IMG/VR virus record: IMGVR_UViG_3300022602_000024
Coordinates: 1 to 64,000 of that record
Length of the DNA stretch: 64,000 nt
Reading direction: 5' to 3' (one strand)
Below, piece after piece: positions 1,624 to 49,800 of this stretch. The first letter of the stretch is position 1; each line of letters starts with the position of its first letter. The translations under genes and the position numbers were made by a program. The notes beneath the pieces were generated by a model. It did not search any database. It saw only the letters and a program-made list of their open reading frames with translations, and had not been told where the DNA came from.

Positions 1624-4600
1624 TTAGATTGGTAAGTATTGTCTCCACAATCTTACATTGGTGCTCGAATTAGCTGCAACAAACTGTAGTGTTGTTGTAC
1701 CACCGCTTGCAGCGACTGTTGCCACTCCCAAGTTACCACCTGTTGCTACAGTACCGTATACTACCACTTGTGCAGCGGTACCTGTTGACACAACCAATGC
1801 TTCCATTGTTTGATAGTTGCTACCATTTGTGGCCTGTATAATATACTTGGCACTACGGTATGCAGTAAACGAATCAAGTGTAGTTAGTGTGTTGGCACTA
1901 CTTACTGACACGTTAGCATCACCTGTTACCAAACCGCCTCCAGGTGGCATAATAAACACATTACCAGCACTACCTGTTCCAGTTGCAAATACGATACCAT
2001 TATTATCGTTGGCAACGTTGATATTTGTAAAACCAGTACTGCTACTTAGTGATTGTACTGTTGAAGTAGTTGTAAGCACACGAGTGTCAATCACGTCACC
2101 GCTTGCAGGTGCTTGGCTGAATGTTAATGTTGTTCCGCTTACTGTGTAAGCGTATCCAGCACCACCAATCTGCACAATACCGTTGATACTTACTAGTACA
2201 CCAGCAGTTGTTGTATTTACAGGCAAAGTAAATGCAGTTGTTGATCCATCACCACTGTACTGATTTTCTTGGATAATAGTAAATGATGTTGTAGCAGCCA
2301 CCCATTGTGATCCAGTGTACCATTCAATACCACCAGCAGTTGAGTTATAACGCAACATACCTTGTGTGTCTGTACCTAATCCGCTTGCAGTTGGACGTTG
2401 ACTGTTTGTACCAACTGGTAGTAAGATTGAGTCTGCACTATTGATTTGCAATTTAGCACCAGCAACCAGTGTACTGGTTGTTGCACTGTTACCAATCACA
2501 ACAGAATCGTATGTACCAGCATGGGCCCACAACAATGTCTTATCGTTCTTACCGCTCATGTACATGTCACTGTTAGCACCAGTTGACTGACTTACGTTAA
2601 TATTGGCACCTTGGCTGATGATTGCATTGTTACCAAAACTTGCACCGCCTGACACAACCATTGTACCGGTTGTTGTGGTAGCAATTGTGCTGTTAGTAGT
2701 AAATGTAGCAACAATGCTATTAGCATATGTACCGCCCACGTGGATTGCCACTGTCTTACCAACTGTGTCTGTACCAATTGTTAAATTACCAGCATCTACA
2801 TACAAGTAACCGTCATTGGCACCCGACATTGTCCATCCACTTGCAGCCCCAGTGAATCCAGAACCGTTAATACCCATGTCAATATAGTGAGTACTATCTG
2901 TACCGTTATCGGCAGTAGCAACAAAGTCTGTTGATGCGTTGTTACCAGAACTGTTGTTCTGTGCTTGGATCTGTACATAGTTGTTAGCCAATCCAGTAGC
3001 AACAATCAATGGGTTGCTCAAACCAATTGTGCTTTGTGCTGGGCCAAAGTAACCAGTACCCCCAATAACTGCGTTACCAGTAGCAAGTGTCAATCCACCT
3101 GCACCTGTAATTACCAATGCACCTTGTGTGCTGGAACTTGGTATAGCAGTTGTACCGCTTGTAATTACAACATTACCACCGTGTGTTGCTACACCGCTCG
3201 ATGATAGTGTAGTAAATGCACCAGTTGAAGCAGTTGTAGCACCAATTGTTGTTCCATTTATGCTACCACCAGTGATAACTGCATTAGCACTGCTTAGGTT
3301 GGTAACAACCAATGTGCCTGCCGAACCACTGATACTATTAACATTGCCTGAACTGAAGTTAGTGGCAACCAATGTTGTTACGTTTCCGTTTGTTACACCA
3401 AGTGTTGCCACGTTACCTGCTGCGGCTGTCAACGAAGTCAATCCAGTTACACTGCCGCCGGTTAACAATACGTTAGCACTACTGATATTGGTAAACAGAC
3501 CAGTTGTACCAGTAATGTTTGTAGCAGTTACATTACCACCTGTGATTTGTGCATTGGCACTACTGATATTGGTAAACAGACCAGTTGTACCAGTAATGTT
3601 TGTAGCAGTTATGTTACCACCAGTGATTTGTGCGTTGGCAGAACTAAAGTTTGTTCCTTGCAATGTAGTAAATGAACCACTAGTCATACCAGTTGTACTA
3701 CCGCCTGCGATTACTGCATTGCCTGAACTGAAGTTAGTTGCTTGTACTGTAGTTGCATTGATTGCAGTAATACCAGTGAATGTACCACCTGTCAACTGAG
3801 CATTACCTGTGCTGAAGTTTGTAGCCTGTAATGTTGTAAAGTTACCAGCAGCTGGAGTTGCATTACCAATAATACCTTGGAAACTTGCAGCGGTTAATGT
3901 TGTAAATGCACCAGTACTTGCAGTAGCATTACCAATTGGTGTTGCTTGTATGCCAGCACTAACTGTTATTGTGTTGGCTGATAGTGCACTACTGATCACT
4001 GCATTTGAAGCATATAGTGTGTTAACACCACTGATGTTACCACTGGAGCCACTTGTTATCAAGTTACCAACAGTGGCATTACCAGCAACATACAATGCAC
4101 CACCAATGCCCGCACCGCCTGTACCAGCAACTACTAGAGCACCAGTTGTAGTGCTTGAACTTGCAGTTCCAGAGTTGGCAACAATATTACCATTGGCAAT
4201 TATTGTACCAGTACTTGTAATGGTTGTAAATGCACCAGTTGAAGCAGTTGTTGCACCAATTGGTGTGTTGTTTACACTACCACCTGTGATTACTGCATTG
4301 CCTGTGCTGAAGCCAGTTGTGGCAACAGCATACGTTGAAGTTGTATTTGTAGAAACTACAGTTGCAATACTGGCTGCAGTTGAATACAATGTACCGGTAC
4401 TTGGTACATATGAAAGAGAAGTATTTGTAAACGCAGCTGCATTTGCACCTGCTACGTTACCAAATATTGGATAGAATGTTGCGCTACTTGTAGTATTTTG
4501 TTCTGATATAAAGTATGCAACATTGGCTTGTGCAGCACCGCCAGAAATCGTACCAGAGAATGTACCATAAATTGTGCCACCCACAAACAAACTACCGCTT

Positions 4601-7431
4601 GCATTAATTTGGGTAGCATTGACATTGGTAGTTGTTACATTGCCGCCAACATATAAGTTGCCGCTTACACTGCCGTCTCCGTAAACACGTACAGTGCCAG
4701 TATTAGCAGTTAATCCACCACCTAGTACTTGAGCATTTGCTACAGTTAATGCACCCATTTTAACAGGGTCATAAATTGCAAATGTATAGTCGGTTACACC
4801 AGCTGTTGGTTCTGGAACATTACTGAAGAATTTCCAAGTTGCATCAGTATAATCACGAGTTAAACCAGTGTGTTGATAATGACTTGGGCTACCACCAACA
4901 AAGTGTGAGTAGAAACCAATATCGTAATTGTAAGTGCCAGGATTACTTGCATTCAAATACAACAGTGGATCATTGACAGATTCAATTGTTGATACTGTTG
5001 ATGTAATATTACCAAAGATATTACCGCCAACCCATAAGTTAGCACCAACATACATACCACCTGTAACCTGTACTGCACCAGAATTCAAACCAACTGAATC
5101 AGTTGAGCTAGTAAATGTTACTGCACCGCTAGCAGCCAATGTAGTAAATGCACCAGTTGCAGCAGTATTTGCACCAATTGGGAAGTTATCTGAATACCCA
5201 CCAGATATACGTGCATTAGCAGTACTGAATCCTGTTGTAACAACCAGTGTCGAAATGTTACCGTTGGTTACACCTAATGTTGCAACATTACCGGAGATAG
5301 CACTCAGACCAGTTAACCCAGTAATTGATCCACCGGTGATACTGGCATTAGCGGTACTGAAACCAGTAGTAGCAACTAGTGTTGTAATGTTTCCGTTAGT
5401 AGCACTAAATGTAGCAACGTTACCGGTAACTGCACTTAGTCCAGTTAACCCAGTAATTGATCCACCGGTGATTCCAGCATTGGCAGTACTGAAGTTTGTA
5501 GCAACTAGTGTTGTAATATTTCCGTTAGTAGCACTAAATGTAGCAACATTACCGGCTACTGCACTTAGTCCAGTTAAGTTGTTTACACTACCGCCAGTGA
5601 TCTGTGCGTTACCAGAGCTCAAGTTTGTACCTTGTAGTGTAGTAAATGATCCACTGGTCATACCAGTTGTGTATCCACCAGTGATCTGTGCGTTACCTGT
5701 ACTGAATCCAGTAGTAGCAACTAGTGTTGTGATATTACCAGATGTAGCACTAAATGTAGCAACATTACCGGCTACTGCACTTAGTCCAGTTAAGTTGTTT
5801 ACACTACCACCTGTGATCTGTGCGTTACCTGTACTGAATCCAGTAGTAGCAACTAGTGTTGTGATATTACCAGATGTAGCACTAAATGTAGCAACATTAC
5901 CGGCTACTGCTGTTAGTGCAGTCAATCCTGTTGCAAATCCACCAGAAACTTGTGCATTACTTGTGCTGAATCCAGTAGTAGCCACTAATGTTGTGATATT
6001 GCCGTTGGTAGCACTAAATGTAGCTACATTACCAGCTGCTGCCGATAGTGCAGACAACCCAGTAGCAAACCCACCAGAAACTTGTGCATTACTTGTACTA
6101 AATCCAGTTGTGGCAACTAGCGTTGTTACATTGGCATTAGTAGAATTTAATGTTGCAACATAAGCTGTACTTGCATTTGCTGTTGTAAGAGTAGCAGCCG
6201 CAGGAGTCACATTACCAATCACTGTGTTATTGATTCCGTAATCAACACTTAAACCAAATGCTGGATTAGCACTTAACGATACACCACCTAAGTTGATGGT
6301 ATTACCGCTTAGGTACAAACTACGGAAACGCAGTGCATTTGTACCTAAATCATATGCTACATTTGCAGATGGTACAATTGATCCTGTCACTGTAATAGAT
6401 CCAGCAATGCCAACGTTGCCATTGATATAACTGTCACCAACTACACCAATACCACCACCAGTGATGGTTAATGATTGGCCAGTTGCAGAAGTATTGCTAC
6501 CAGTACCACCAGACAAACCTGTGATTTTTCCGCCTGTGATTACAGCATTAGCACTGCTGAAATTGGTTACCAGTCCGTATGTAACAGTTGCATTACCGCC
6601 AGTGATTTGTGCATTGCCAGAACTGAAATTGGTTCCTTGCAATGTAGTAAATGAGCCACTGGTCATACCAGTTGTACTACCACCTGTGATCACTGCATTA
6701 CCTGAACTAAAGTTAGTGGCTTGTAGTGTAGTTGCGTTAATAGCAGTAATACCAGTAAATGTACCACCAGTTAACTGTGCATTACCAGAACTGAAGTTGG
6801 TTCCTTGTAGTGTAGTAAATGAGCCGCCGGTCATGCCAGTTGTACTACCACCTGTGATCACTGCATTAGCAGTGGCAAAGCCAGTTGTTGCGTTTAAGTA
6901 TGTGAAATTACCAGTACTGGGTGTTGTATTACCAATCGGAGTGCCGTTTAATGACCCAATGCTGATACCACCAGACAAGTTTAAACTAGCTGCAGTTAAG
7001 TTACCAACCTTAACGTTAGCAAAACCACTATTTGTCAGTGTTGTAAATGCGTTACCAGAAGTTGTTGTTGCAATGGCTTCAAAAGCCTGATCGTTTTCTA
7101 CCCAGACCCAAGCAGTATTCACAGAACCGTAAGCACCTAGTGATGCATAGTTACGATTGACCATAATACCGATGTTATAACCAGAAATACTGCCGGTATA
7201 TCCGTTGTTGAACACAACAATCGGATCGTTAATATATGTGTTGACTGAATTTAATGTGCTGGTATTGCCGCTGACCGACAAGTTGCCGAGGATGGTAACG
7301 TTAGAATTTAACGTTACGCTTGATGAAAATAGGTTACCGGTAATGGTTCCGGTTGCAATTTTGTATTGCGCATTGATAGTATTATCAGTGATCTGATTAT
7401 TCTGGATTCTGGTTAAAACGCCTGATGACAT
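1624..7431 (-). CDS. Giant repetitive tail-fibre/adhesin-like virion protein (1935 aa)
   Basis: Long ORF rich in G/T/A/N/S with 44-aa and 27-aa internal repeats. C-terminal GDGSTTAFTL...YTVSGTTLTFSQAP and DSF..YRSAKY modules are shared with neighbouring genes. TAAATA and GGAG lie upstream. Confidence 0.8.
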   Translation of the reverse strand: MSSGVLTRIQNNQITDNTINAQYKIATGTITGNLFSSSVTLNSNVTILGNLSVSGNTSTLNSVNTYINDPIVVFNNGYTGSISGYNIGIMVNRNYASLGAYGSVNTAWVWVENDQAFEAIATTTSGNAFTTLTNSGFANVKVGNLTAASLNLSGGISIGSLNGTPIGNTTPSTGNFTYLNATTGFATANAVITGGSTTGMTGGSFTTLQGTNFSSGNAQLTGGTFTGITAINATTLQATNFSSGNAVITGGSTTGMTSGSFTTLQGTNFSSGNAQITGGNATVTYGLVTNFSSANAVITGGKITGLSGGTGSNTSATGQSLTITGGGIGVVGDSYINGNVGIAGSITVTGSIVPSANVAYDLGTNALRFRSLYLSGNTINLGGVSLSANPAFGLSVDYGINNTVIGNVTPAAATLTTANASTAYVATLNSTNANVTTLVATTGFSTSNAQVSGGFATGLSALSAAAGNVATFSATNGNITTLVATTGFSTSNAQVSGGFATGLTALTAVAGNVATFSATSGNITTLVATTGFSTGNAQITGGSVNNLTGLSAVAGNVATFSATSGNITTLVATTGFSTGNAQITGGYTTGMTSGSFTTLQGTNLSSGNAQITGGSVNNLTGLSAVAGNVATFSATNGNITTLVATNFSTANAGITGGSITGLTGLSAVTGNVATFSATNGNITTLVATTGFSTANASITGGSITGLTGLSAISGNVATLGVTNGNISTLVVTTGFSTANARISGGYSDNFPIGANTAATGAFTTLAASGAVTFTSSTDSVGLNSGAVQVTGGMYVGANLWVGGNIFGNITSTVSTIESVNDPLLYLNASNPGTYNYDIGFYSHFVGGSPSHYQHTGLTRDYTDATWKFFSNVPEPTAGVTDYTFAIYDPVKMGALTVANAQVLGGGLTANTGTVRVYGDGSVSGNLYVGGNVTTTNVNATQINASGSLFVGGTIYGTFSGTISGGAAQANVAYFISEQNTTSSATFYPIFGNVAGANAAAFTNTSLSYVPSTGTLYSTAASIATVVSTNTTSTYAVATTGFSTGNAVITGGSVNNTPIGATTASTGAFTTITSTGTIIANGNIVANSGTASSSTTTGALVVAGTGGAGIGGALYVAGNATVGNLITSGSSGNISGVNTLYASNAVISSALSANTITVSAGIQATPIGNATASTGAFTTLTAASFQGIIGNATPAAGNFTTLQATNFSTGNAQLTGGTFTGITAINATTVQATNFSSGNAVIAGGSTTGMTSGSFTTLQGTNFSSANAQITGGNITATNITGTTGLFTNISSANAQITGGNVTATNITGTTGLFTNISSANVLLTGGSVTGLTSLTAAAGNVATLGVTNGNVTTLVATNFSSGNVNSISGSAGTLVVTNLSSANAVITGGSINGTTIGATTASTGAFTTLSSSGVATHGGNVVITSGTTAIPSSSTQGALVITGAGGLTLATGNAVIGGTGYFGPAQSTIGLSNPLIVATGLANNYVQIQAQNNSSGNNASTDFVATADNGTDSTHYIDMGINGSGFTGAASGWTMSGANDGYLYVDAGNLTIGTDTVGKTVAIHVGGTYANSIVATFTTNSTIATTTTGTMVVSGGASFGNNAIISQGANINVSQSTGANSDMYMSGKNDKTLLWAHAGTYDSVVIGNSATTSTLVAGAKLQINSADSILLPVGTNSQRPTASGLGTDTQGMLRYNSTAGGIEWYTGSQWVAATTSFTIIQENQYSGDGSTTAFTLPVNTTTAGVLVSINGIVQIGGAGYAYTVSGTTLTFSQAPASGDVIDTRVLTTTSTVQSLSSSTGFTNINVANDNNGIVFATGTGSAGNVFIMPPGGGLVTGDANVSVSSANTLTTLDSFTAYRSAKYIIQATNGSNYQTMEALVVSTGTAAQVVVYGTVATGGNLGVATVAASGGTTTLQFVAANSSTNVRLWRQYLPI
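5300..6130. repeat. 132-nt (44-aa) coding repeat array
   Basis: TGFSTGNAQITGG...AGNVATFSATSGNITTLVAT units; for example CGTTACCTGTACTGAATCCA occurs at 5691 and 5823. Confidence 0.8.
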
Positions 7432-20597: not shown

Positions 20598-23204
20598 TTA
20601 GGCCACAGCCCGGAAATGATTTTCTGAGATATCTTTGTGATCTTCGAGTATATTAATCATTTCGTCAAATTTATCTAACAATGCTTGCATACCTGGCAAC
20701 ATACCGTTGACTAACGGAGTTACCAGTTCACGTTGCCCACCTTCTGCCACTGTTACATTAGATCCGCTAGAACTGGGATTTACAATTCCCCCGCTAGCAA
20801 GCTGAGCATGAACGTGGTCTCCAGTTGCAGTAACTTTTGTACCATCTTTTCGTAATATTTCTTGTCCTTTTTTCTCAAAATCAACTCTAGAGAATCCTAT
20901 TGCTTTTAGTGCAGCAACCACTGTGTCAACATCACCTAGGGGATTAATGTCTATGGCTTTACCCCACCCGTGCACATCGTTTTTGTGTGCTGCAAAAATA
21001 TCCGAATCATTAAGTGCATTTATCATCACGTGAGATAATACAGAATCAGAATTCATTTTATCAAGCATGCCTTGCAGTTGAGGGGTGATCCCACCAGTAC
21101 CAGCTCTACCATTGGTCATCAATCTACCTACATTTGGTGGCACTAATTCAGACAATCCTCTTGTAAGCGATCTACCCGGGCCTTCGGTGCCATACAATTC
21201 AGTGTCGCCACCGCCTTCACTGACAGAAGCTGGTGCAGCAGTTCCTGCTGAGCCACCAATACCCCCAGCAGTAGCAGGTTTGTGTATGCCAGTATGAGCC
21301 CCACCAATGGCTGCACCTCCGCCCGAGGATCCAAAAGCGTGAGCACCACTGACAGCAGCAGAGGCACGTCCATTGGCTTCACGTCTTTGTTTTTCTTCTG
21401 GTGAGACAAATCCAAGTTTGTCCCTGTAGTTGTACAAATCATCGTATATTTCTTTGATCATGTCAGAAAATTGGCTAAGACCTCCATCTAGTCCTTTCAT
21501 GATCTCTATACGCTGACTTTGCCAATCCATCATTTGTTCTGCAAAGTGTGTAGGGTCACCAGCTCCGCTAGTTAATGCTTTGGCTGCGTCCCCAAAAACA
21601 TCAGCCATTTTAGTACCAGCAAGACTTAGTTTTTCAGCATTTTGATAAATGCCTTGAACATCACCGTACTCGCCTGTTAACAGGTTTACTTGCCCAAATC
21701 CAGTTTTACCTACTTGATTCAACATAGGCTTTGACATTTGTTGTATAGTTGTTACTGTTGCTTTGCCTGTTCTTGCAGCTTCGTTTGAGATATTTCTTGA
21801 ATTTTTTGCAGCCTCTTCAACCATTTGTCTGATAGCTGGTGCTTGTGCAGAAGCCATTAAGAATCCCTGTTGTGTAATAAATCCGTAAACACGTTGTTGC
21901 ATATAAGCAGTTTGTGTTTCTTGATTATCGCCAAGAGTTTTTAGATTCTGTTGAAATCCTTCTACTAATTTTTTAAATCTGTCGGCTATTTCTTCTTGTG
22001 TTCCACCGCCGGCTACTGCTTCTTCTCGCAGTTTTGATAAAACTTGAGTTTGCATTGTAGCGGCTTCAGCACGAGCCTGCGCTTTTTTAGCATCTTCACT
22101 AGTGAATGCACTTATGGCTTTTATGTTAACTAACCAATCACGTGTTTCTTTGGCAATGTCTTGAGCATTTTTTCTTTGTAAATCGCCAGCCATACCCAGT
22201 ACACCCATATAGTGTATAGTACCGTCAGCGATATCTTCAAATGTTAGACCCAAATTCAGCAGTTGCTCAGTGAAACCATTGGTGCCCATTGCATTACTAA
22301 CCATACTGAACTGTTTAGCACCTTGTGTAACCGAACCTCCAAACTTTATGAGACTTTCAGTGTTATTTTTTATTGCATTAGCAAATTGTGTTTGATCTAA
22401 ATAAGCATCTTCAGCAAGTTGACGCAATTCTAATAACCCACCAGCAAATGTAGCACCAGCAGATGATACTGTTTGCATGGCTTTGACTGCACCATCCATT
22501 TCTTTAGATAGTGTTTGTATTTTAAACTTTTTAAGGTCTTCGTATTTTTCAAACAAGAAGCCACCAGCAGCCGTAGCTGCGGCCCCAAGTGCCCATAACG
22601 GGGCTGCTGCGCCCCCAGTGGCCGCAGACAAAACTCCTAATCCTGTCATTGCACTAGAAGCTGCGCCAGTCATGCCTTTGACTACTTCAACATTCCTGTC
22701 AATTTGTAGTGTTTGCAATTCTCCTGCAGCCTGAAAAGCACTGGCATTGCTTTGATAACTGCTTATTAAAGATTTATAAACATTTATACCGTAGTTGGCA
22801 GTTGCAACTGCAATGGTTTCTGCACTGTCGACCACTGCTTTGACCAGATGTGCCGAAGCTGATTGTTCTTTGAGCTTGTTTATTTCAGACTGTTTAGCGG
22901 CTCGTTCGTTAGCGTCAGTTAATTCATCAACTTGTTCTTGTAAATAATGCAGATCTCCAGCAACATCTGTGTAGCTTTTTCGTCCCGATTTTAATGCTTT
23001 ATCAAGTTGATTTAAAGAATAATTGGCTTGTCGTAATATTGTGTCTTGATCCCTGGTAGATCCAGCCAATTTCTTCGATTTATCAATTATGCCCTCAAGT
23101 GCTTCAGCTTCTTTTTTACCAAGAGAATTTAATAGAAGTTGATTTTTTCTCTTCCATTCAAACAGTTCTTTTTCTAATTCTAACGCTTCATTATTTTCAG
23201 GCAT
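20598..23204 (-). CDS. Tape-measure-like protein with C-terminal M15-type peptidase motif
   Basis: Long helical A/Q/G-rich ORF with HGWGKAID...DHVH near the C-terminus and a terminal ASGGIV....TVAEGG.RELV motif. Start moved to ATG 23204 because the track start (23234) overlaps the promoter region. Confidence 0.72.
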   Translation of the reverse strand: MPENNEALELEKELFEWKRKNQLLLNSLGKKEAEALEGIIDKSKKLAGSTRDQDTILRQANYSLNQLDKALKSGRKSYTDVAGDLHYLQEQVDELTDANERAAKQSEINKLKEQSASAHLVKAVVDSAETIAVATANYGINVYKSLISSYQSNASAFQAAGELQTLQIDRNVEVVKGMTGAASSAMTGLGVLSAATGGAAAPLWALGAAATAAGGFLFEKYEDLKKFKIQTLSKEMDGAVKAMQTVSSAGATFAGGLLELRQLAEDAYLDQTQFANAIKNNTESLIKFGGSVTQGAKQFSMVSNAMGTNGFTEQLLNLGLTFEDIADGTIHYMGVLGMAGDLQRKNAQDIAKETRDWLVNIKAISAFTSEDAKKAQARAEAATMQTQVLSKLREEAVAGGGTQEEIADRFKKLVEGFQQNLKTLGDNQETQTAYMQQRVYGFITQQGFLMASAQAPAIRQMVEEAAKNSRNISNEAARTGKATVTTIQQMSKPMLNQVGKTGFGQVNLLTGEYGDVQGIYQNAEKLSLAGTKMADVFGDAAKALTSGAGDPTHFAEQMMDWQSQRIEIMKGLDGGLSQFSDMIKEIYDDLYNYRDKLGFVSPEEKQRREANGRASAAVSGAHAFGSSGGGAAIGGAHTGIHKPATAGGIGGSAGTAAPASVSEGGGDTELYGTEGPGRSLTRGLSELVPPNVGRLMTNGRAGTGGITPQLQGMLDKMNSDSVLSHVMINALNDSDIFAAHKNDVHGWGKAIDINPLGDVDTVVAALKAIGFSRVDFEKKGQEILRKDGTKVTATGDHVHAQLASGGIVNPSSSGSNVTVAEGGQRELVTPLVNGMLPGMQALLDKFDEMINILEDHKDISENHFRAVA

Positions 23205-23216
23205 GATTTTTCCAGG

Positions 23217-23241
23217 TAAATATGAATATATCATTTATTTA
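23217..23241. promoter_or_regulatory. Face-to-face TAAATA late promoters
   Basis: TAAATA on + at 23217-23222 and on - at 23241-23236, between divergent genes. Confidence 0.6.
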
Positions 23242-23254
23242 TGGGATCAAAAAT

Positions 23255-24094
23255 ATGGAAAATATCTCTGCTAATCCTTTAGCTAAACATTTTAGACAAC
23301 CTGCAATTTACATGAAATTGCCTAGTGGTGGTCGTTTTTGGAAAGAAGGCAGTTTAAATCTTCCCGCAACCGGCGATATACCTGTTTACCCAATGACTGC
23401 ACGTGATGAAATTACTATCCGTACACCCGATGCATTGATGAACGGTCAAGGTGTAGTTGATGTTATACAAAGTTGTTGCCCAAACATAATAGATGCGTGG
23501 AAAATGCCCAGTATTGACGTTGATGCAGTATTGCTAAACATACGTATTGCCAGTTACGGGGGCAATATGGATTTTGATACCAAATGTCCAGCTTGCCAAA
23601 ATGAATCAAGTTTTAGTTTAGACATGGGCAAGATAGTACAACAAATTTCTATGCCAAACTACGATGATCCTTTGGTATTTGACGGATTTAAAATAAAACT
23701 TAAACCACAACCGTATTTTGAAGTAAACCGTGTAAATCAAATCAGTTTCACTGAGCAACAGATACTGCGTTCAGTTAACGATAACAATATACCCGACGAA
23801 GAAAAGAAAACAATAACTGAAAAATATCTAAACAAGTTGATTGATTTAAACATCGAAGTTAGTTTAAACAGTACCAGTTCTATTACATTAGATGACGGTA
23901 CAGTAGTTACTAATATAATGCATATTAAAGAATTCTATGCCAATGCAGAATACAGAATATTAAAAGACATAGAAAAACGTCTCAAAGAGATCAATGATCA
24001 AGTGGCACTTGATCCAGTTGATGTTGTGTGCTCTGCTTGCGCTAACGAATATAAAATTCCGCTAACCTTTGACTACGCAAATTTTTTCGGTTAA
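23255..24094 (+). CDS. T4 gp26-like baseplate hub/tail assembly protein
   Basis: NPL..HFRQPAIY.KLPS.G, MTARDE, L.IR.ASYG, CP.C and C..C motifs, ending DYANFFG. ATG 23255 is preferred over 23222. Confidence 0.75.
   Translation: MENISANPLAKHFRQPAIYMKLPSGGRFWKEGSLNLPATGDIPVYPMTARDEITIRTPDALMNGQGVVDVIQSCCPNIIDAWKMPSIDVDAVLLNIRIASYGGNMDFDTKCPACQNESSFSLDMGKIVQQISMPNYDDPLVFDGFKIKLKPQPYFEVNRVNQISFTEQQILRSVNDNNIPDEEKKTITEKYLNKLIDLNIEVSLNSTSSITLDDGTVVTNIMHIKEFYANAEYRILKDIEKRLKEINDQVALDPVDVVCSACANEYKIPLTFDYANFFG
24082..24088 (+). other. Slippery heptamer T TTT TTC (putative -1 programmed frameshift)
   Basis: X XXY YYZ heptamer two codons before the stop. The -1 frame is open from 24073 through 24318. 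Confidence 0.65.
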
Positions 24095-24099
24095 GGCTT

Positions 24100-24318
24100 T
24101 TGTCTCTATCCAATGAAGAGATTGTAGCACAAATTGAATCAATGGAAAATGAGACAAAAGCCATTAAACAAGAAGCACTAAAAATGTGTTGGTATATGCG
24201 AGGTGGTCTTAGTTATACCGAATCTATGGATTTAAGTTTTACAGAACGTGAAATTATTGGTAAAATAATTAAAGAACATATAGAAACAACTAAAGAGTCA
24301 GGATTGCCATTCTTTTAA
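24100..24318 (+). CDS. gp51-like baseplate hub assembly protein, probably the frameshift extension of the upstream ORF
   Basis: CWYMRGGLSY.E..DLS..ERE.I..II.E motif. Only a TTG or an SD-less ATG is available as an independent start. Confidence 0.65.
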   Translation: MSLSNEEIVAQIESMENETKAIKQEALKMCWYMRGGLSYTESMDLSFTEREIIGKIIKEHIETTKESGLPFF

Positions 24319-24742
24319 GATGTACTGCGTACATCTGTTGTTTCGCTTATCAGCTCACAACACTATTCTTATTCGCTTAAGCGGATTAAGTTTCATCCAG
24401 ATTCCTCAGTCACACTTTGCCCGCACAGGGCAAAGATCACTTCATCCGAGTTCGGAACAGTCATTAGCGTTACTGCATTACAGAGGCGGTTGTCCGGTAC
24501 CTCGAGCAGTGTCTTTATCACAACGGCAACTAATATAATATACGCTAACATACTATATTAACCTGCACTATCGCTAGTGCGTCTTTTTAGCCTTAAATTC
24601 TTTTCAAACAATCAAACTAGAGCATTTAACCAGTCGTCATCCTTAACGGGTAGTGATTGAGTACTCTCAACGGCGAGAGATTTACGTCCCTGTGACCCTG
24701 GGTCCAGTTTTCATGTACGCACGAACTTGGCCTGCGTGAGCC
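24318..24742 (-). ncRNA. Candidate large structured ncRNA (~420 nt) 3' of the GIY-YIG gene
   Basis: At least 10 stems read by eye, one GNRA-capped hairpin, a nested multi-stem and an 8-bp loop-to-distal complement. No credible ORF. Family not recognised. Confidence 0.65.
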
Positions 24743-25177
24743 TTAACCGTTTAACTTATCTTTTATGTGGGAGCCATGTACACGGACCTGAATGTGTCCG
24801 TTATAATAATCTGCTGATTCTAAGACTTGGTGTCGAAATTGTTCTCTTGCTTCTATGTAGGAGCATTCTGCTTTGGATTTACAGTAAAAAAGTATTTCTC
24901 TAGTGAAGTTTTCTTTGCCTAGAGTTTCTACATCTTTGTTTAGTTCTATATTTGAGCCATAATATTCGCGCCAATCACTGTCAATTGTACCACGAATTTT
25001 CTTTTTTTTCTTTGTACCGTTTTTGAGTTTTACTGTTTTATATGTTGTTTTAGAGAATTTTGCTAGTTTCTTGCCTATATATTTACGATTAGATAGATTA
25101 TTTGTAATGAGGTATACAAACCCGACACAATCTTCGGGCAAGTCCTCTACAGTGATGTTTTGATAAAGCCATGACAT
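24743..25177 (-). CDS. Minimal GIY-YIG endonuclease (Seg-like catalytic domain only, 144 aa)
   Basis: GFVYLITN...RKYIGKK, Y.GS, F.REIL, conserved E (YIEARE) and N (YYNG). No appended DNA-binding domain. Confidence 0.85.
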   Translation of the reverse strand: MSWLYQNITVEDLPEDCVGFVYLITNNLSNRKYIGKKLAKFSKTTYKTVKLKNGTKKKKKIRGTIDSDWREYYGSNIELNKDVETLGKENFTREILFYCKSKAECSYIEAREQFRHQVLESADYYNGHIQVRVHGSHIKDKLNG

Positions 25178-40869: not shown

Positions 40870-43800
40870 ATGGCTCTTTTTAACACAATTAATTTTTTAC
40901 CTTCCGTATTCCAAACTGTAACTAATCAACGGTTTTTAGGCGCCACTCTTGACCAGTTAGTAACTGATGCAGTGAATGTCCCCACTGACGGATACATTGG
41001 GCGTACATTTGCCCCAACATATCAAGCCGGGGACAATTATATTCCTGAACTCAACGAGTTAAGAAAAAATTATCAACTTGAGGCTAGTGTAGTTGTTACT
41101 GATAAAAACAATAATATTGAATTTAATGCTGGATTCATTGACTTATTGAACAGCCTATATTCAAACGGCGGAATAGTTAATAATCAACAAAGACTATTTG
41201 CGGGAGACAAATACAATTATGATGGCCATTTTGATTATGATAAGTTTGTAAACTATTATAATTATTATTGGTTGCCCAACGGCCCATTGGACGCAAACGG
41301 AAATCCTACGTCAGTGGCAGTATCAGCAGCAGGTACACCGTACTCGGCAATTTATACAGTTACACGCAATACCGCACTAGGCGGATATGTTTTTAGCGGA
41401 TTAGGTACACAACCTAACTTGCCGTTGACATTGGCACGCAGCGGAACTTATCAATTTGTTATTAACCAGCCTGGCATTAACTTTTGGATACAAAGTGATT
41501 CTGGCATTGCCGGAACTAAATCTAATCTTCCATCTGTCAGCACACGTTCTGTGTTTGGAGTCAAAAACAACGGCACAGACAGCGGCACAATAACATTTAC
41601 AGTACCGTCATCATCTAGTCAAGATTTCTATGCCAATATGCCAGTTGTGGCCAATGTGGATGCTGCGGTTAACAATTTAAAATACAAAGATATACAAGGA
41701 CAACTTCTTAGTACATTCTTAGCCAACAACGGATCTGGTATAGATGGTATTAACAATTCATTGTCTGGGAAAAAATTTATTTTTGTATACGAGATAACAA
41801 CTGATGCAGACTGGACAGTTAACGGTGTAACTATCCCTGCAGCACAACGCAATAGTGTTTGGCAAATTACGGTTAACAATACAAATGGCATTATGTCTCT
41901 TAATCCGGTGCAAACAGTTACACCTCTAACCAAGGTTTCTATCACATCTGGTAAAACATATGCAAGCGTGCAGTTTTGGTTAAACAATAATTTTCAATAT
42001 TTAACTATTCCAAATATAACTGCTGCTCAAGAGTTTTTGTATTACCAAGACAGCCTAAACCCTGACTTTAACGGAGTGATTAAACTGGTTGACAACTCTT
42101 CGGCAGTCATTGATGTAGAGGCTGAAATCATTGGAAAGACAGGATATGTTAGTCCCAATGGAGTACTGTTTACTAATGGATTAAAAATACAATTTGATGC
42201 AACTGTGACTTCTGCTACTTACGCTGGTAATCAATATTATGTCGAAGGAGTTGGTACTGGCATGACATTGGTACCAGTGTCAGAATTGGTATCGCCTATT
42301 CCTGTTGGGGCATTTGGAATTGACACCAATGAAGAAGCAGATTATATAACCATTAACCGTGCTAGTCAAGACAGAAATCCCTGGTCGGTTGGTAATCACT
42401 GGTTTCATAAGGATGTTATTGAAGCAACTGCCAAATACAACAACGAACAGGTGACTATTGCTAGTTATGGTCCAAACATCGCCGGACGTCGCCCTATTAT
42501 TGAATTTGAGCCCAACTTACAGTTGTTTAACTATGGCAAACAAGCTGGCAATAAGATAACTTACATTACATTTGAAGCAACAGATGCATTTGCAGACATT
42601 GAAGGGCAAAGAACTTATACTTTAGATGGGCACGTATTAAAAAATGGCGACCGTATTGTTTTTGCCAATGATTATGACATTACCATTGTAAATGAAATTT
42701 GGGAAGTGCAAATACAAGAAGTCAGTGCTGGTATACAATACTTGACCTTGGTTGAAACCACAGATGATCCAGTGTTACCCGGACAAAACTTTTTAGTAAC
42801 CAGTGGGTTGCACGCTGGTAAAATTTATCAATATAACGGAACTTGGAATTCTATTCCTTGCCAAATCAAATATACTTTAAATCAACCTCCTTTGTTTGAT
42901 CTAGTAGACAGCAACGGTTATAGTTTTGCAGACACTACTGTTTATCCTGGTAGTACATTTGCTGGAACACAATTCTTTGGATATAATGTTCCCACAGTCT
43001 CGGCCGGTTCGTTTATTGTAGGGTCAACCTACACAATCACATCCGTTGGTACAACAGACTTTACTGCAATAGGGGCAAGTGCAAATCAGTATGGCATTAC
43101 TTTCACAGCCACTGGTGTTGGTACTGGTACAGGCATGGCTTGTTCAGTATCTTTGGCAGATACCCTACTAGGATTTCCATTAACATATCAAAACTTTAAC
43201 AATATCGGCGATATCCAGTTTAGCAATTATTACGATACAGATACATTTACATACGTAGAAAATCAATCCGTGGTTGCTGTTAACTGTAACTCTGGTTACC
43301 TTAATAAAAATTCCGGACTTACTACTAGTACAAAACTAAACAATTGGGTCAGTAGCATTGAAGTAACAGAGCAGTTTCAAACATTTACTAATTTCTTCAA
43401 TGGAAGAACATTACCATTAAATGGAGTTGAGACTGCATATGTACCCATTGATGTATTGCCAGTTACTCAAAAAACAATCCCTCATATTAAAGTTTATCTC
43501 AATAATAATTTGTTAATGGGTCCTGGCACAGCTACAAATCCACAAGACTATCAGATTAGTCAATTTGGAATTTATAATGCTATAACATTAACTACATTGC
43601 CAACTGTTGGTGATAAAATTGATGTTAAGATTTTTAGCAATACTGCAAGTTCCTTGGGCTACTACGAAGTGCCTGACAACTTAGATTTTAACGCATTAAA
43701 TGAAAATTTTGAAACAATCACTTTAGGGCAAATAAGAACACACTACAATACGCTAATAGAGAATAAAGCAGTAGGTACAACAACAACTCCGCCATTGCAA

Positions 43801-46800
43801 GACAGTTACCTAAAACAACAAGGTGGTACAATATTAAAACATGATTCTCCGTTGGTTTATGCAATGACTTTCTTAGCTGATCCGACAGTTAATTTTGAAA
43901 ACGGAATAAATCTAGCCAGAAGAGAATACACTAAATTTAAAAATAAATTTTTAAATCTCAGTACAACACTAAGCACACTGAACTATTCTGATGTTGCTGG
44001 AAGCGTTGATAAAATATTGCAGAACATTAACGGAATAAAAAATAGTAGTTTTCCTTGGTATTATAGCGACATGGTACCTCAAGGCAGTAACTATTTTACC
44101 ATAACATATAATGTAGTTAATGCAAGACAGACACAATATGAAATTAGCAGTATCTTTAATAATACTGTTATCAGTAATCGTTCTGTATTAATTTATGTCA
44201 ATGGCGTGCAAAAAACAGTGGGCGCGGATTATAATTTTAGTTTAGTAAGTCCGTCGGTGACATTCACCAATACACTAACAGTCGGAGATGTTATTGTAAT
44301 CAGAGAATACAGCAGCACTGACGGAAATTATATTCCCGAAACTCCTAGTAAGTTAGGACTCTATCCTTCGACTCCACCGGAGATTTATGTAGATAATACA
44401 TACCAGACTCCTACTACAGTTATTCGCGGTCACGATGGTAGTTTAACTCCGGCATTTGGTGATTTCAGAGATCAATTTTTGTTGGAGCTTGAGTTAAGAA
44501 TCTACAATAATATCAAATCAAACTATGCTAATAATCAAATTGATTTATCTGCAATCACTCCTGGACGTTTTAGAACAACTGATTATTCGTTGGCTGAATA
44601 CAATCAAGTACTAGCGCAACATTTTTTAACCTGGGTTGGATCTAATAGTGTAGACTATACTTCTAACAGTGGATACAGTCCAAATAATCCATGGACTTGG
44701 AACTATGGAGAATTTCCAGACATAGTTGACGGTACATATTTACAAGGTTTTTGGCGTGCAATATACAAATATTGGTACGACACTGATACCCCTAATCTAA
44801 CTCCCTGGGAGATGCTAGGGTTTAGTAGCAGACCCAGCTGGTGGACAAAACGTTATGGTCCTGCACCTTATACCAGCGGCAATACATTGCTATGGGAAGA
44901 CATGGAAGCAGGATATGTTTGGAATAACGGAACTCCTTACACTAACACAAACTATGCAAGACCTGGATTGACCACTTTAAATGGTCGTGGATTTGTCCCA
45001 GTTGATTCTGCAGGAAATTTACTAACCCCAACTCAGATTCCGGTATTTAAACAATATAATTATTCTGGCGCCAGCAGTAATTTTTCAGTTGGTCAGCAAG
45101 GTCCGGTAGAAACAGCTTGGCGCAGAAGCAGTGATTATCCTTTTGCAGTACAAAATACCCTGGCATTATTATATCCAGCCAAGTATTTTGCAACACAACT
45201 AGATACTTCAAGATTTTATAAAAATTCAGCCACTGGGCAATTCACAGACTCTAGTAACCGAGCAATTGCACCTAAGTTACTAACAGTCAACGGAGCAACA
45301 GTCAATGGAACTGTGCAAAGGACCAGTGGATACATTAATTGGATTGCAGACGGGATTAAAAATCTAGGAATGGATCCAGCGGCATTGATCACCGAATACT
45401 TTACCAATTTGTCTGTACAACTAAATTATAAGGTCGGCGGATTCATTGATCAAAATTTAATCACAATATCTGCAGAACAAACAACACCTGGCTCTACCAA
45501 TGCATCTGTTATTATTCCCGATACAAACTATAAGGTATATCTTAGTAAATCTGTACCAGTTTCATCATTGATATATAGCGCAGTTATTATAGAGTTAACT
45601 TCCTTGGGCTATAGTGTCAAAGGATACGATACAAACAATCCATTTTTTAGTATTATTCCTAGTATTGCCAGTGGCAATGTGATACCTGTGACTGCTAATA
45701 ATATAACTGTGCAACTGTATCAAGATAAAACAAATACAGTGCAAACTGTTCCTTATGGTACAACATTTACCAGCATACAACAAACTGCTGATTTTTTATA
45801 CAGTTACGAAAGATATTTGATATCACAGGGACTGGTATTTAATACGTTTAATCCAGATTTAAATATTGAACAAAACTGGACTCTGAGCATTCAAGAATTT
45901 ATGTATTGGGCACAACAAGGCTGGGCACCTGGCAATGTTATCATATTAAATCCAATTTCAACACAGTTAGAATTAAATGTTCCCGGTGCAGTTATTGATG
46001 AGATCAATAATACCAGTAACGGTAATAGAATCTTAGATGAAAACTTTAATCCGATTAAGAGTAATTTCTTTAATATTATACGTACCGATGGCCCTGATGG
46101 TAATAGATCTTTGATAAGCACTATCAACGGATCAACTATTGCTTATGCACATCTGAGCTTGGTACAGTATGAACATGTATTGGTATTTGATAATGTTGAT
46201 GCCTTCGGGGATATCATTTATATTCCTAGTCAAGGAACCAGACAATATCGTTTAAAATTGAATGGCACCAAAACTGGAGCTTGGAATGGCGCATTGAGTG
46301 CTCCAGGATATATCTATAGTAACCCAAATTTAAAAACTTGGTCTACTGGCACAGATTATAAACTCGGCGACATTGTTATATATAACAATAGATACTATAC
46401 TGCAAGTCAGGACATACCAGCTGCAACAACGTTTAACTTGTCTCTATGGACTCCAATTAATCAGAGCGATATACAAACTGGGTTACTAAGTAATTTTGCA
46501 TTAAATGCCGAAGAGTTTGTGAACTTTTATGATGTAGATAACCCACCACAGAATAAAATTTATCAAGAATATGCGTCGGGTTTGATTGGCTTCAGACAAC
46601 GCCAATATTTAACAGACTTAGGTGTTAGTTTACCCACACAGACCAAATTCTATCAGGGATTCATCAAGCAAAAAGGTACAAACAATGCTATCAATGCGCT
46701 GACAAAAGCCAACTTTAACAATGTTCAAGGTAACTTGAATGTTTATGAGGAATGGGCATTCTTGGCTGGAGTTTACGGTGGAGTAAACAGCAATCAGTTT

Positions 46801-49800
46801 AAAGAATTTGTATTGGATCAAGCTGTATTCAATACTAATCCTGTTGCGTTTACCATTGGCGACACATATAGTACTGCAAATGCTATTATAGATTTTACAT
46901 TGGCAAATATTTATAATGCTAGCAATCTGTATACTACAAGCACATCAGTATATACTAATCGTACAAATACTTCTTATATAGAAGATTTGCCTACCACTGG
47001 ATATATGAATCTTCAAGACATTGATTATACTATATTTGATATTGCTAATATTAATCCTACTACAGAAAATATTACCAACTTGGGCGCAGGAAGCAAAATT
47101 TGGGTAGCAAAGAATTTTAGTGGACAATGGGATATACTTAGAGCAACAGAAACAAATTTAACTGCAACTGTATTAAGTTATGTTTTAGATAACTACGCAC
47201 AGTTAACTTTTAATAATGCTCACAATTTTAATACCGGTGATGTATTCATATTAAAATATTTTAATAATTCATATGACGGAATTTATACCATTGTTAATGT
47301 ACCTAACTTAACAACAGTGGTTATTGCCATAAATGACATTACCACTGGGTCAGCGTTGAACTCATTGAGCCCGTTAAAGAACTTGATGAGAGTATCTCAT
47401 GTTAATGGAACAGGAACAGTATATCGTCTGACTTCGGCTCACGTGTCTACAGTCACAGATTTGGTTAACTTACCAGTACCGCCTAATGGTTGGTTAGATA
47501 ATGATCATGTATGGGTAGACAACGCCAGTTCTGATGGGTGGGCAACATACACATACAATAAAACATGGCAAGCAAATTCATCTATTAGAATAACTGCTAA
47601 CTCCGCAGTTAATAATTCTTACTTTGGGCATGTTACACGAATTAGCACAGACACTAATACAATATATGTAGGTAGTCCAGGTACACGACAAGTGCAGTTA
47701 TTTGCCAATGTAACCGGAACTTATACCGCGACTACTACTCTATCAAATGTGGATAGCAGTTTTGGTACTGCAATAGAAACACAAGGCAATTTGTTGGCTG
47801 TCGGGGCACCTGTTAGCAGCAATGTACATGTTTATTTAGGAACGACACCAATACAAACTCTACATTCAACTGACGCTATGGAGTTGTTTGGCAGCAGTAT
47901 ATCAATGAGTGCAGATCAACATTGGTTGTATGTTGGCGCACCAGAGTCGGGTAATGTAAAAGCATTCTGGACTGCTACTGTAGGAACAAATACCAACTAC
48001 TGTTACATAGCGACCATTGGCACCACAACAGGCAACTTTGGACAAACTGTTAAAACCAACAGGGACGGGTCTATTGTGATTGTCGGTGCGCCTGCGGCCA
48101 ATACTACAAAAACACAAAACGGCAATGTTTATGTTTACACTAGAACTGCCAACACATTTGTGTTAAGCCAAACTTTAACTAGTCAACATCAAAACAACTA
48201 TGCCAATTTTGGTACCAGTGTAGATATTGACAGCACGGCCACAAATCTATTCATTGGTGTTCCCGGATCTACAGCAGCTGGATATGCCAATGGACAAGTT
48301 GAAAGATATGTATTGACGGGATCAACCTATGTGTTCGATGAAATCATTGCACATCCATTTGGCGACATCGGAACATTTGGGTCTGCAGTCAGTGTTAGTA
48401 GTGATGCTAATATATTGGCAGTGGGCAGTGTTGGTTCGCCTAGTCAAGAAACAACCACATTTGACTACACTACTATGACCATTGATGCCGACACTACTAA
48501 ACTGGTAGATCGTATTTTTAACAGTGGGGCAACATATCTATTCCAACTTTTACAAGATTATTTAACTGGTACCGACGGAGAATATTTATATACACAAGAA
48601 CTTGAAAGTCAGTTGTATTCTGGGGAAGAATATGGTGCTAGTGTTGCTGCCACTCGCGGAGTGATTGCAATCGGTGCACCCGGCTACAATAAAAACCAAG
48701 GAACAGCATACATACTCACTAATAAAACTCAACAGTTGAATTGGAGTGTGACACGTAAACAGTCTCCCGCAGTTGACATCAATAGCATTAATAGAACATT
48801 TATCTATAATAAAACTAATAATAACATTATTACTACACTGGATTTTATTGATCCAATAAAAGGCAAAATACTAAATGCAGTTGATAGAGATATTAACTAT
48901 AAACTAACTAAAGATCCAGCACTCTATAACAAAGGTTCAACTAGTATGGTTGAAAACTTGTCCTGGGGTCCAGAGCAAGTTGGTATAGTATGGTGGGATC
49001 TAAGCACAGTCAGATATATTAATTACGAGCAAGATACACTAACATATAGATTAACAAACTGGGGAACTGTATTCCCTGGTAGTAGTGTTGATGTATATCA
49101 ATGGGTTGAAAGTACAGTTCCTCCAAGCCAATACACAGCCAATGGAGGAATTGGTATTCCGCTACATGCAGATAATTCTGCATATAGCACATACGGATAT
49201 GTGAATCCTGCCAATGGTGTATTGACAGTAAAGTATTATTTCTGGGTCCGAGATTTAACTCTGATTGCCAAAGGAAAAAATAATAGTGTCTATGCAATTG
49301 CAGAATCTATTAGAAATCCACATAGTCAAGGCATACCTTATGCAACAGTACTTAGAGACGATACAGTTGCACTATACAATGTTGATACTTTATTGTCGGG
49401 GTCAAATAGTGTAATACAACTTGGCAGTCAGAATCCTGGCGAAACCAAAGAAACTAATCTAATACACAGTGAATATGCTTTGGTACAAGAAGGAAACCCT
49501 AGTAGTAAAATACCAAATAGCATACTAATCAAATTAATAGACAGTTTGTCTGGAGTCGACAGAGCTGGTAATGTAGTGCCCGATCCTGCTCTTATACCGA
49601 GTCAAGCATACGGAGTCAGCATACGCCCTCGCCAGTCAATGATAATAAATCAGCCATTGGCATTGAGCAACTATTTGAGTTTAGTTAACCCTTTATTGCT
49701 AGCTTATCCTGTTGTGGAACGTAAAGTGTTAACCATATTAAACAGTAGTGAAGCTGCTCCAAATGCAGATTCTGGCGCTTATCAAATAACAGTCAATAAC

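Follow-up and report, generated by a model that had tools for sequence, protein, structure and literature searches.

How can a phage genome that carries a single gene of the T4 gp26/gp51 family supply both functions, which T4 encodes as two separate genes, 26 and 51? This question is raised by a locus of a giant freshwater phage, found in a window of 64,000 nucleotides (positions 1 to 64,000 of the IMG/VR record IMGVR_UViG_3300022602_000024). In this window, an ORF encoding a gp26-like protein ends with AAT TTT TTC GGT TAA and overlaps a short ORF in the -1 frame. A sequence-only reading proposed that a -1 programmed frameshift fuses the gp26-like ORF to a gp51-like ORF, following the logic of the tail chaperones G/GT. 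As detailed below, comparative sequence data strongly support the frameshift, whereas the equivalence with tail chaperones is only an analogy of logic. The relevant features are as follows:

20598–23234, minus strand: adjacent, divergently transcribed 878-aa gene encoding a probable tape measure protein with a C-terminal VanY/M15-like peptidase motif, a presumed client of the chaperone.
23255–24094, plus strand: 0-frame gene for the short form (279 aa; an alternative ATG lies at 23222), a T4_baseplate (gp26/gp51-family) domain with two Cys pairs (C111/C114 and C259/C262) and an invariant C-terminal FF.
24082–24088, plus strand: slippery heptamer T_TTT_TTC in the X_XXY_YYZ register, spanning the third base of Asn276 and the two Phe codons.
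24088–24318, plus strand: -1-frame extension of 76 codons plus TAA (RLRLLSLSNEE...WYMRGG...ER...ESGLPFF), a Gp51_C-like tail that would be added to the long form.
24092–24094, plus strand: 0-frame stop codon TAA, one codon after the heptamer and inside the base of the stem.
24092–24166, plus strand: downstream stem-loop, the putative frameshift stimulator.
24318–24336, plus strand: terminator-like hairpin followed by a T-rich tail, directly after the stop of the -1 ORF, marking the end of the transcription unit.

The -1 frame is closed upstream by TGA at 24070–24072, opens at 24073 and runs to TAA at 24316–24318. A fusion starting from the ATG at 23255 would contain 278 + 76 = 354 aa (DYANFF|RLRLLSLSNEE at the junction). 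The first ATG of the -1 ORF is located at 24142 and is not preceded by any GGAG-like motif, whereas a TTG at 24100 has only AAGG 3 nt upstream.

Conservation of the slippery site, the -1 ORF and the downstream stem

All 83 distinct related loci (27–99% aa identity) carry the same heptamer, followed by G in 82 of 83, a 0-frame stop 1–6 codons later and, in all complete loci, a -1 ORF of 70–77 aa, while the +1 control frame runs only 2–20 codons. The same arrangement is found in the seven cultured jumbo-phage records that were read, including Cassandra, PAC2, Kaldavass and Phosso. This pattern is beyond chance, as codon usage elsewhere in the same genes (TTT 77% and TTC 23%, giving 0.175 for TTT-TTC, with NNT at about 0.62) predicts a frequency of only about 0.11 per independent lineage. 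The -1 ORF is conserved as a protein from its first codon, residues R1, L4 and L5, directly after the slip, being at least 90% conserved. By contrast, it lacks any conserved start codon: only 1 of 83 loci has a start codon in the open -1 stretch preceding the slip, the position of the first start inside the ORF varies and 2 loci have none. A blastn search of the locus against the phage collection did not reveal any DNA match.

The minimum-energy fold of the region 24089–24175 (-28.9 kcal/mol, z -6.06, 0 of 200 shuffles as stable) contains a core of 12 perfect bp (24095–24106 with 24151–24162), extended by 3 bp (24092–24094 with 24164–24166) across a 1-nt bulge. The first pair lies 3 nt and the core 6 nt after the heptamer, and the 44-nt loop contains inner hairpins. 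The TCTCT/AGAGA hairpin proposed by the sequence-only reading is therefore rejected as the conserved element, as TCTC (24103–24106) pairs with GAGA (24151–24154) and not with AGAGA at 24117–24121. RNAalifold by itself returned no consensus structure on an alignment of 65 sequences; the stem was named by eye from this alignment and then tested. In these sequences, 77.7% of cells are paired, compared with 69.5% in shuffles (0 of 500 reach the observed value) and at most 53.8% in slid controls. Pair 30-95 is UA in 34 and CG in 20 sequences and pair 33-92 is GC in 34 and AU in 26. These compensatory changes pair synonymous Leu third positions with K/R and S,T/V,I codon changes located 20 codons away. 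A long-range stem starts 1–8 nt after the heptamer in 77 of 80 loci (median z -3.38), although PA5oct, 121Q and a few other loci have weak fold z-scores. No Rfam family matches the element.

The same cassette, with T_TTT_TTC at the FF and the -1 relation, occurs in 62 of 62 distinct cyanophage-type loci. In these loci, the tail is shorter (59–66 aa) and the downstream hairpin differs and is weaker. The cassette is also found in S-PM2, Melnitz, C48C1, phiM9 and Aeromonas ZPAH1; in phiM9, the heptamer is T_TTT_TTG. Ackermannviridae (Klebsiella phage May) and Vibrio phage K490 have a -1 ORF with a Gp51_C-like motif but no canonical heptamer, and the mechanism is not claimed for them.

Relationships with T4 gp26 and gp51 and with tail assembly chaperones

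The upstream ORF matches the Pfam family PF12322 T4_baseplate (1.8e-16, 61 bits for a cut-off of 24.5, profile positions 9–218 of 219), which also matches T4 gp26 and gp51, and phrog_150 baseplate hub (1.4e-21). BLASTP against T4 gave only E 0.004 for gp51 and nothing for gp26. The PF12322 domain ends at the FF in the protein of the window, at FF in T4 gp26, which ends 3 residues later, and at VF in T4 gp51, which continues for ~48 aa. These boundaries rely on Pfam profile coordinates, as an hhalign comparison of the jumbo-phage domain with full-length gp51 gave only 61% probability and a mis-registered C-terminus. The -1 extension, which is about 20 aa longer than the tail of T4 gp51, resembles only the C-terminal tail that gp51 alone possesses (Gp51_C, PF28602) and not the whole protein. 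This relationship rests on moderate scores: comparison of an alignment of the extensions with an alignment of gp51 tails gave a probability of 77% and E 2e-5 over 36 columns, and 20 of the 100 nearest Atlas clusters carry Gp51_C, the best with a score of 0.90 (170 of 256 shared features). The AlphaFold model of the domain has a pLDDT of 85.8. Docking of the extension on the domain gave an ipSAE of 0.43 against a best control of 0.00, which is rated as weak support. The 98%-complete genome contains one PF12322 gene, whereas T4 has two full-length paralogous genes on opposite strands. T4 encodes the FF of gp26 as TTC TTT and the VF of gp51 as GTG TTT, neither of which is slippery.

In T4, gp26 and gp51 are hub assembly chaperones, and gp51 is required for assembly but is absent from the particle (PMC3004832). 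Some GenBank annotators already call T4-type gp26, gp51 and gp28 "tape measure protein assembly chaperone", so that this part of the idea is not new. The logic recalls that of the -1 frameshift of the tail assembly chaperones gpG/gpGT of lambda and gpE/gpE+E' of P2 (Xu, Hendrix and Duda 2004, cited in PMC9024508 and reviewed in PMC5009743), P2 using T_TTT_TTG. However, no sequence or fold similarity to known tail assembly chaperones was found: there was no such Pfam or PHROG hit, no PDB sequence hit and no Foldseek hit at E <= 0.001 for the domain model or for a T4-type gp51 model, and VIA-align of the domain model matched only a generic helical hairpin. Moreover, the short form is about 280 aa long with a Zn-ribbon-like pair of Cys motifs, against about 90–140 aa, and the putative stimulator is a long-range stem. 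The gene is adjacent to the probable tape measure gene but divergent from it, not directly upstream on the same strand. The synteny of portal, 878-aa gene and hub gene is shared with PA5oct and 121Q, where the homolog of the 878-aa protein is a virion protein. The nearest named Atlas clusters of this protein are tape measure families and VanY (scores 0.93–0.87), which is a lead only; no Pfam, PDB or T4 gp29 sequence match was found. The tube (PF06841) and sheath (PF04984) families were not found in the genome. The arrangement may also be compared with the -1 frameshift of E. coli dnaX (tau/gamma), where a heptamer and a stem-loop about 6 nt downstream seem to set a fixed ratio of two proteins sharing an N-terminus; in dnaX, however, the shifted form is the shorter one and an upstream SD-like element contributes, whereas none is seen here.

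A model for the expression of the locus and its alternatives

Taken together, these data most likely reflect a single late gene yielding two proteins by -1 programmed ribosomal frameshifting, although this is inferred from comparative sequence data without protein, ribosome-profiling or reporter evidence. Most ribosomes would read the 0 frame and stop at TAA 24092–24094, giving the 279-aa gp26-like short form. A fraction would pause with the two tRNA-Phe on UUU_UUC because of the 12–15-bp stem starting 3–6 nt downstream, slip back one base on U_UUU_UUC, re-read C24088 as CGG and continue for 76 codons. The resulting 354-aa long form would carry an extra helical module, probably packed on the domain, that resembles the C-terminal tail of T4 gp51. 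The two forms would share the domain that, in T4, is needed to assemble the baseplate hub around the tape measure, and the frameshift efficiency would set a fixed short:long ratio of a putative hub/tape-measure assembly chaperone. In this model, T4 and its close relatives have replaced the frameshift by two paralogous genes, 26 (short) and 51 (long).

Independent translation of the downstream ORF, from TTG 24100 or by termination-reinitiation at the overlapping stop, with a T run that only reflects a conserved Phe-Phe motif, appears unlikely. It is true that the ORF is annotated as a separate small gene in 121Q, Kaldavass, Phosso, S-PM2 and phiM9, that a TTG sits at codon 5 of the -1 ORF in 37 of 83 loci and that FF is also conserved in T4 gp26, which has no frameshift. 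In some lineages (121Q, Kaldavass, phiM9), an ATG overlaps the 0-frame stop, so coupled re-initiation could also make a free small protein there. However, the first ATG is usually at codon 33–37, inside the WYMRGG motif, residues preceding every candidate start are conserved, and the only SD-like AAGG lies inside the stem. The synonymous choices NNT-TTT-TTC are invariant, while T4 uses TTC TTT. In PA5oct and ZPAH1, gene callers found no ORF there at all.

Transcriptional slippage adding one U to the T6 run would produce exactly the same NFFRLR fusion, and some relatives have T7–T8 (Melnitz and C48C1). Nevertheless, without RNA reads, this also seems improbable, as T6 is shorter than the runs of about 8–9 that appear to slip efficiently in bacteria, the X_XXY_YYZ register and the following G are nearly or fully invariant, and a covarying stem 3–6 nt downstream is the hallmark of ribosomal frameshifting and not of polymerase slippage. 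Lastly, homopolymer runs are error-prone and T4 gp51 has both parts in one frame, but an assembly or sequencing indel, or a decaying gp51-like gene broken by a 1-nt deletion, is refuted by the comparative data: the same arrangement occurs in 145 distinct loci from independent assemblies and in finished cultured genomes, contigs from four independent lake and freshwater DNA runs show no indel at the T run, and both reading frames remain under protein-level conservation.

Implications for gp26 and gp51 of T4-related phages

None of the 16 GenBank/RefSeq records inspected carries a joined or slippage feature, the -1 ORF being annotated as a tiny orphan gene or not at all, and no description of this frameshift was found in literature searches that could not cover subscription-only papers. 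Thousands of phage genomes and metagenomic contigs would need a corrected gene model. Sullivan et al. (PMC3037559) noted in 2010 that cyanophage gp51 lacks the first ~200 aa and is only about 20% of the T4 length; this "short gp51" of cyanophages and marine vibriophages, a small ORF directly after gp26, was described as a reduced gene with no frameshift proposed. The frameshift gives a mechanistic answer to this puzzle.

It is somewhat more probable than not that the frameshift is the general, and possibly ancestral, way that T4-superfamily and related jumbo myoviruses make their gp26 and gp51 functions, the lineages seen here being Kyanoviridae, Pootjesviridae, Emmerichvirinae and the Rak2/121Q-, PA5oct- and Atu_ph07-type jumbo phages. 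Under this reading, the two genes of T4 are a later duplication that replaced it, and PF12322/Gp51_C would be a second, non-homologous family of frameshifted tape-measure chaperones. That would extend the Xu-Hendrix-Duda rule to the one large group of long-tailed phages thought to lack it, and would also explain the "short" or "missing" gp51 of cyanophages and Aeh1-like phages. T4 gp26 and gp51 are among the last T4 tail genes without a defined role, and the frameshift links them to the best-understood logic of tail length and initiation control, a fixed-ratio short/long chaperone pair.

Anatomy and genomic context of the putative frameshift site

The sequence-only reading, which proposed a -1 frameshift joining a gp26-like and a gp51-like ORF, is matched by the window in its sequence statements, although the stimulatory hairpin that it named is not the conserved one (see below). 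The upstream ORF ends AAT TTT TTC GGT TAA and its probable start is the ATG at 23255 (279 aa), because homologs begin there; an upstream ATG at 23222 would give 290 aa. The elements of the locus are the following:

23255-24094 (+), upstream 0-frame ORF, with its stop codon at 24092-24094
24082-24088 (+), heptamer T_TTT_TTC in the X_XXY_YYZ register
24070-24072 (+), TGA that closes the -1 frame upstream of the heptamer
24073-24318 (+), open -1 frame, ending with TAA at 24316-24318
24318-24336 (+), terminator-like hairpin following the -1 stop

Slippage would give a protein of 278 + 76 = 354 aa. The -1 ORF has no ATG before 24142, and the TTG at 24100 has only an AAGG 3 nt upstream.

The window corresponds to the first 64 kb of a 354-kb viral contig that is 98% complete, and the sequence is found in lake and freshwater metagenomes. 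The neighbouring genes encode a T4-type portal, prohead protease and major capsid protein, gp46/47-like nuclease subunits and a late sigma factor. An 878-aa gene (20598-23234, - strand) lies between the portal gene and the upstream ORF, on the opposite strand to the latter. Two giant ORFs of 3801 aa (40870-52275, + strand) and 1935 aa (1624-7431, - strand) are also present in the window. On the other side of the locus, a 144-aa ORF (24743-25177, - strand) matches phrog_447 (labelled NAD synthetase) and several homing-endonuclease PHROGs, and is probably a GIY-YIG-type mobile endonuclease. Directly 3' of this ORF, positions 24606-24742 (- strand) strongly match Rfam RF01718, the Polynucleobacter-1 RNA motif (103.5 bits, gathering score 37, E 6e-23), which may hint at a Polynucleobacter-type freshwater host. 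Between the -1 ORF stop and this RNA motif, the short stretch 24284-24440 has a word depth of up to ~380 in four lake and freshwater DNA metagenomes, against ~5-20 for the flanking phage gene, and looks like an element shared with many other genomes in those samples.

The upstream ORF is a Pfam T4_baseplate domain (PF12322, 1.8e-16) and belongs to phrog_150 "baseplate hub". A search for its cultured relatives found 96 records; these relatives, at 27-34% identity, are jumbo myoviruses, i.e., Atu_ph07, Phosso, PA5oct and kin, 121Q/PBECO4-type, GAP32, CBB and Xanthomonas phages. The protein database holds 2940 relatives, most of them on metagenomic contigs of up to 360 kb.

Conservation of the slippery heptamer and of a downstream RNA stem

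Eighty loci were retrieved from IMG/VR with an alignment of the domain, and the loci collected earlier and those of the cultured phages were added. Every one of the resulting 83 distinct loci has T_TTT_TTC at the invariant C-terminal Phe-Phe, in the same register, and it is followed by G in 82 of them. A 0-frame stop lies 1 to 6 codons later and the -1 ORF is 70-77 aa in all complete loci, whereas the +1 frame, used as a control, runs only 2-20 codons. Cassandra, PAC2, Kaldavass and Phosso show the same cassette. Elsewhere in these same genes, Phe is encoded by TTT (77%) or TTC (23%), and the codon before FF (Asn, Ser-AGY or His) ends in T about 62% of the time. The three synonymous choices that make the heptamer are therefore expected about 0.11 of the time per independent lineage. 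The -1 peptide is conserved from its very first codon (R-x-R-L-L, with R1, L4 and L5 at 90% or more), i.e., upstream of any possible initiation codon. Only 1 of 83 loci has a start codon in the short open -1 stretch before the slip, the position of the first start inside the ORF varies widely and two loci have none. Contigs from four independent DNA runs show no indel at the T run.

In an alignment of 65 junctions, the consensus GGCTTTTG, located 6 nt after the heptamer, is the reverse complement of CAAAAGCC, located about 57 nt further on. In the window, this stem has 12 perfect pairs (24095-24106 with 24151-24162), and three more pairs include the stop codon. The fold of 24089-24175 has an energy of -28.9 kcal/mol (z -6.06), and none of 200 shuffles is as stable. 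The TCTCT/AGAGA hairpin proposed by the sequence-only reading is not the conserved structure. RNAalifold on its own gave no consensus and no Rfam family matches the element, but when the named helix was counted on the alignment, 77.7% of cells were found to be paired, against 69.5% in shuffles (0 of 500 reach the observed value) and at most 53.8% when the partner is slid. One pair is UA in 34 sequences and CG in 20, and another is GC in 34 and AU in 26. The 5' partners are synonymous third positions of Leu codons, while the 3' partners change K/R and S,T/V,I about 20 codons downstream; the coupling is therefore at the RNA level. Atu_ph07 keeps a 10-bp version with different letters, and one subfamily uses a different stem that starts 2 nt after the heptamer. 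Over 80 loci, the median z is -3.38, and in 77 of them a long-range stem starts 1-8 nt after the heptamer.

Relation to T4 gp26 and gp51 and distribution among other phages

The PF12322 profile matches residues 1-206 of T4 gp26 (208 aa, ending ..EFFELL) and residues 1-201 (..VDVFK) of T4 gp51 (249 aa), which continues for about 48 more residues. In the 290-aa version of the window protein, the match ends at residue 289, the FF, and the 0-frame stop lies one codon later. The slip site therefore lies exactly at the domain boundary where the gp51 tail begins. The -1 extension aligns with an alignment of gp51 tails with a probability of 77% (E 2e-5), and 20 of its 100 nearest Atlas clusters carry PF28602 Gp51_C, the family precomputed on gp51 homologs, so that it probably resembles this tail. 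T4 encodes its FF as TTC TTT and its VF as GTG TTT, and thus has no slippery site. The genome of the window has one PF12322 gene, whereas T4 has two. T4 also annotates an internal in-frame start, 26' (3803-4090 of the retrieved T4 locus), that gives the C-terminal 95 aa of gp26, a further way in which this family makes more than one product from one gene.

A predicted model of a T4-type gp51 (pLDDT 90.9) shows the tail as four helices within one compact fold, and the predicted model of the window's domain has a pLDDT of 85.8. Folding the domain and the extension as two chains gave an ipSAE of 0.43 against a best control of 0.00. The runs agree in at least 72% of contacts and the partner pLDDT is at least 74, but this is rated only as weak support, as the mark was reached by 58 of 80 solved complexes and by 2 of 110 mismatched pairs in the calibration of the method.

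The cassette is also found outside these jumbo phages. Sinorhizobium phiM9 (Pootjesviridae) has T_TTT_TTG and S-PM2 (Kyanoviridae) has T_TTT_TTC, both followed by a -1 ORF annotated as a small "gp51", while Melnitz and C48C1 (Kyanoviridae) have T_TTT_TTT and an annotated small "gp51"-type ORF. Aeromonas ZPAH1 (Emmerichvirinae) has T_TTT_TTC, and its -1 Gp51_C-like ORF (1393-1566 of the retrieved locus), like that of PA5oct (4334-4558 of the retrieved locus), is not annotated at all because it has no early start codon. All 62 of 62 distinct cyanophage-type IMG/VR loci have T_TTT_TTC followed by G and a 59-66-aa -1 ORF conserved from the slip. Their downstream hairpin is different and weaker: about 5-45 nt after the heptamer, a recurrent hairpin of the type GTTCTATAAT...ATTATAGAAC is encoded by the conserved FYN..NYYRT peptide, with only modest fold z-scores (median -1.29). 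Sullivan et al. recorded in 2010 that cyanophage and marine vibriophage gp51 lack the first ~200 residues and that gp51 is "missing" in Aeh1, but did not propose a frameshift (PMC3037559). That such a -1 ORF goes unannotated without an early start codon probably explains why gp51 was reported missing in Aeh1. In Klebsiella phage May (Ackermannviridae; 1489-1662 of the retrieved locus) and Vibrio phage K490 (1455-1652 of the retrieved locus), a -1 ORF with a Gp51_C-like ..MPWH.. motif follows the PF12322 gene, but there is no X_XXY_YYZ heptamer, and K490 has an ATG overlapping the stop. The mechanism may differ in these phages, for example coupling or a non-canonical shift.

Alternative explanations and putative function

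Independent initiation of the downstream ORF is contradicted by the conservation upstream of every start, by the invariant synonymous sites and by the loci with no start, although it may add a free small protein in a few lineages that have an ATG at the stop. Transcriptional slippage would give the same protein and, in the absence of RNA data, it can only be said that the fixed register and the covarying stem favour the ribosomal mechanism. A sequencing error or gene decay is excluded by 145 distinct loci and by finished genomes. Taken as a whole, these data make it likely that the frameshift is real and makes two isoforms, although slippage in vivo is inferred, without protein evidence.

In T4, gp26 and gp51 are listed as hub assembly chaperones; gp51 is required for assembly but is not in the particle, and the hub contains the tape measure gp29 (PMC3004832). 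One GenBank record (Konradin) already names gp26, gp51 and gp28 "tape measure protein assembly chaperone". The neighbouring 878-aa gene encodes a virion protein in PA5oct and 121Q. Its product in the window, a probable tape measure, has hydrophobic Gly/Ala-rich segments and a C-terminal H..D...H.H motif like VanY/M15 peptidases; it has no Pfam or PDB sequence hit and, by language-model features, is nearest to tape measure families and VanY peptidases, which is only a lead. No sequence or fold similarity to lambda-type chaperones was found. The system would therefore work like G/GT but is not a member of that family. That it chaperones the tape measure is an inference, and a tape-measure/hub chaperone acting through a ratio of the two forms appears somewhat more likely than not.

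No annotation of this frameshift was found in the 16 records inspected, nor any description of it in full-text searches, which did not cover subscription-only literature. Frameshifted tail chaperones are already known, but here the device appears in an unrelated protein family and in the phage group usually treated as lacking it.
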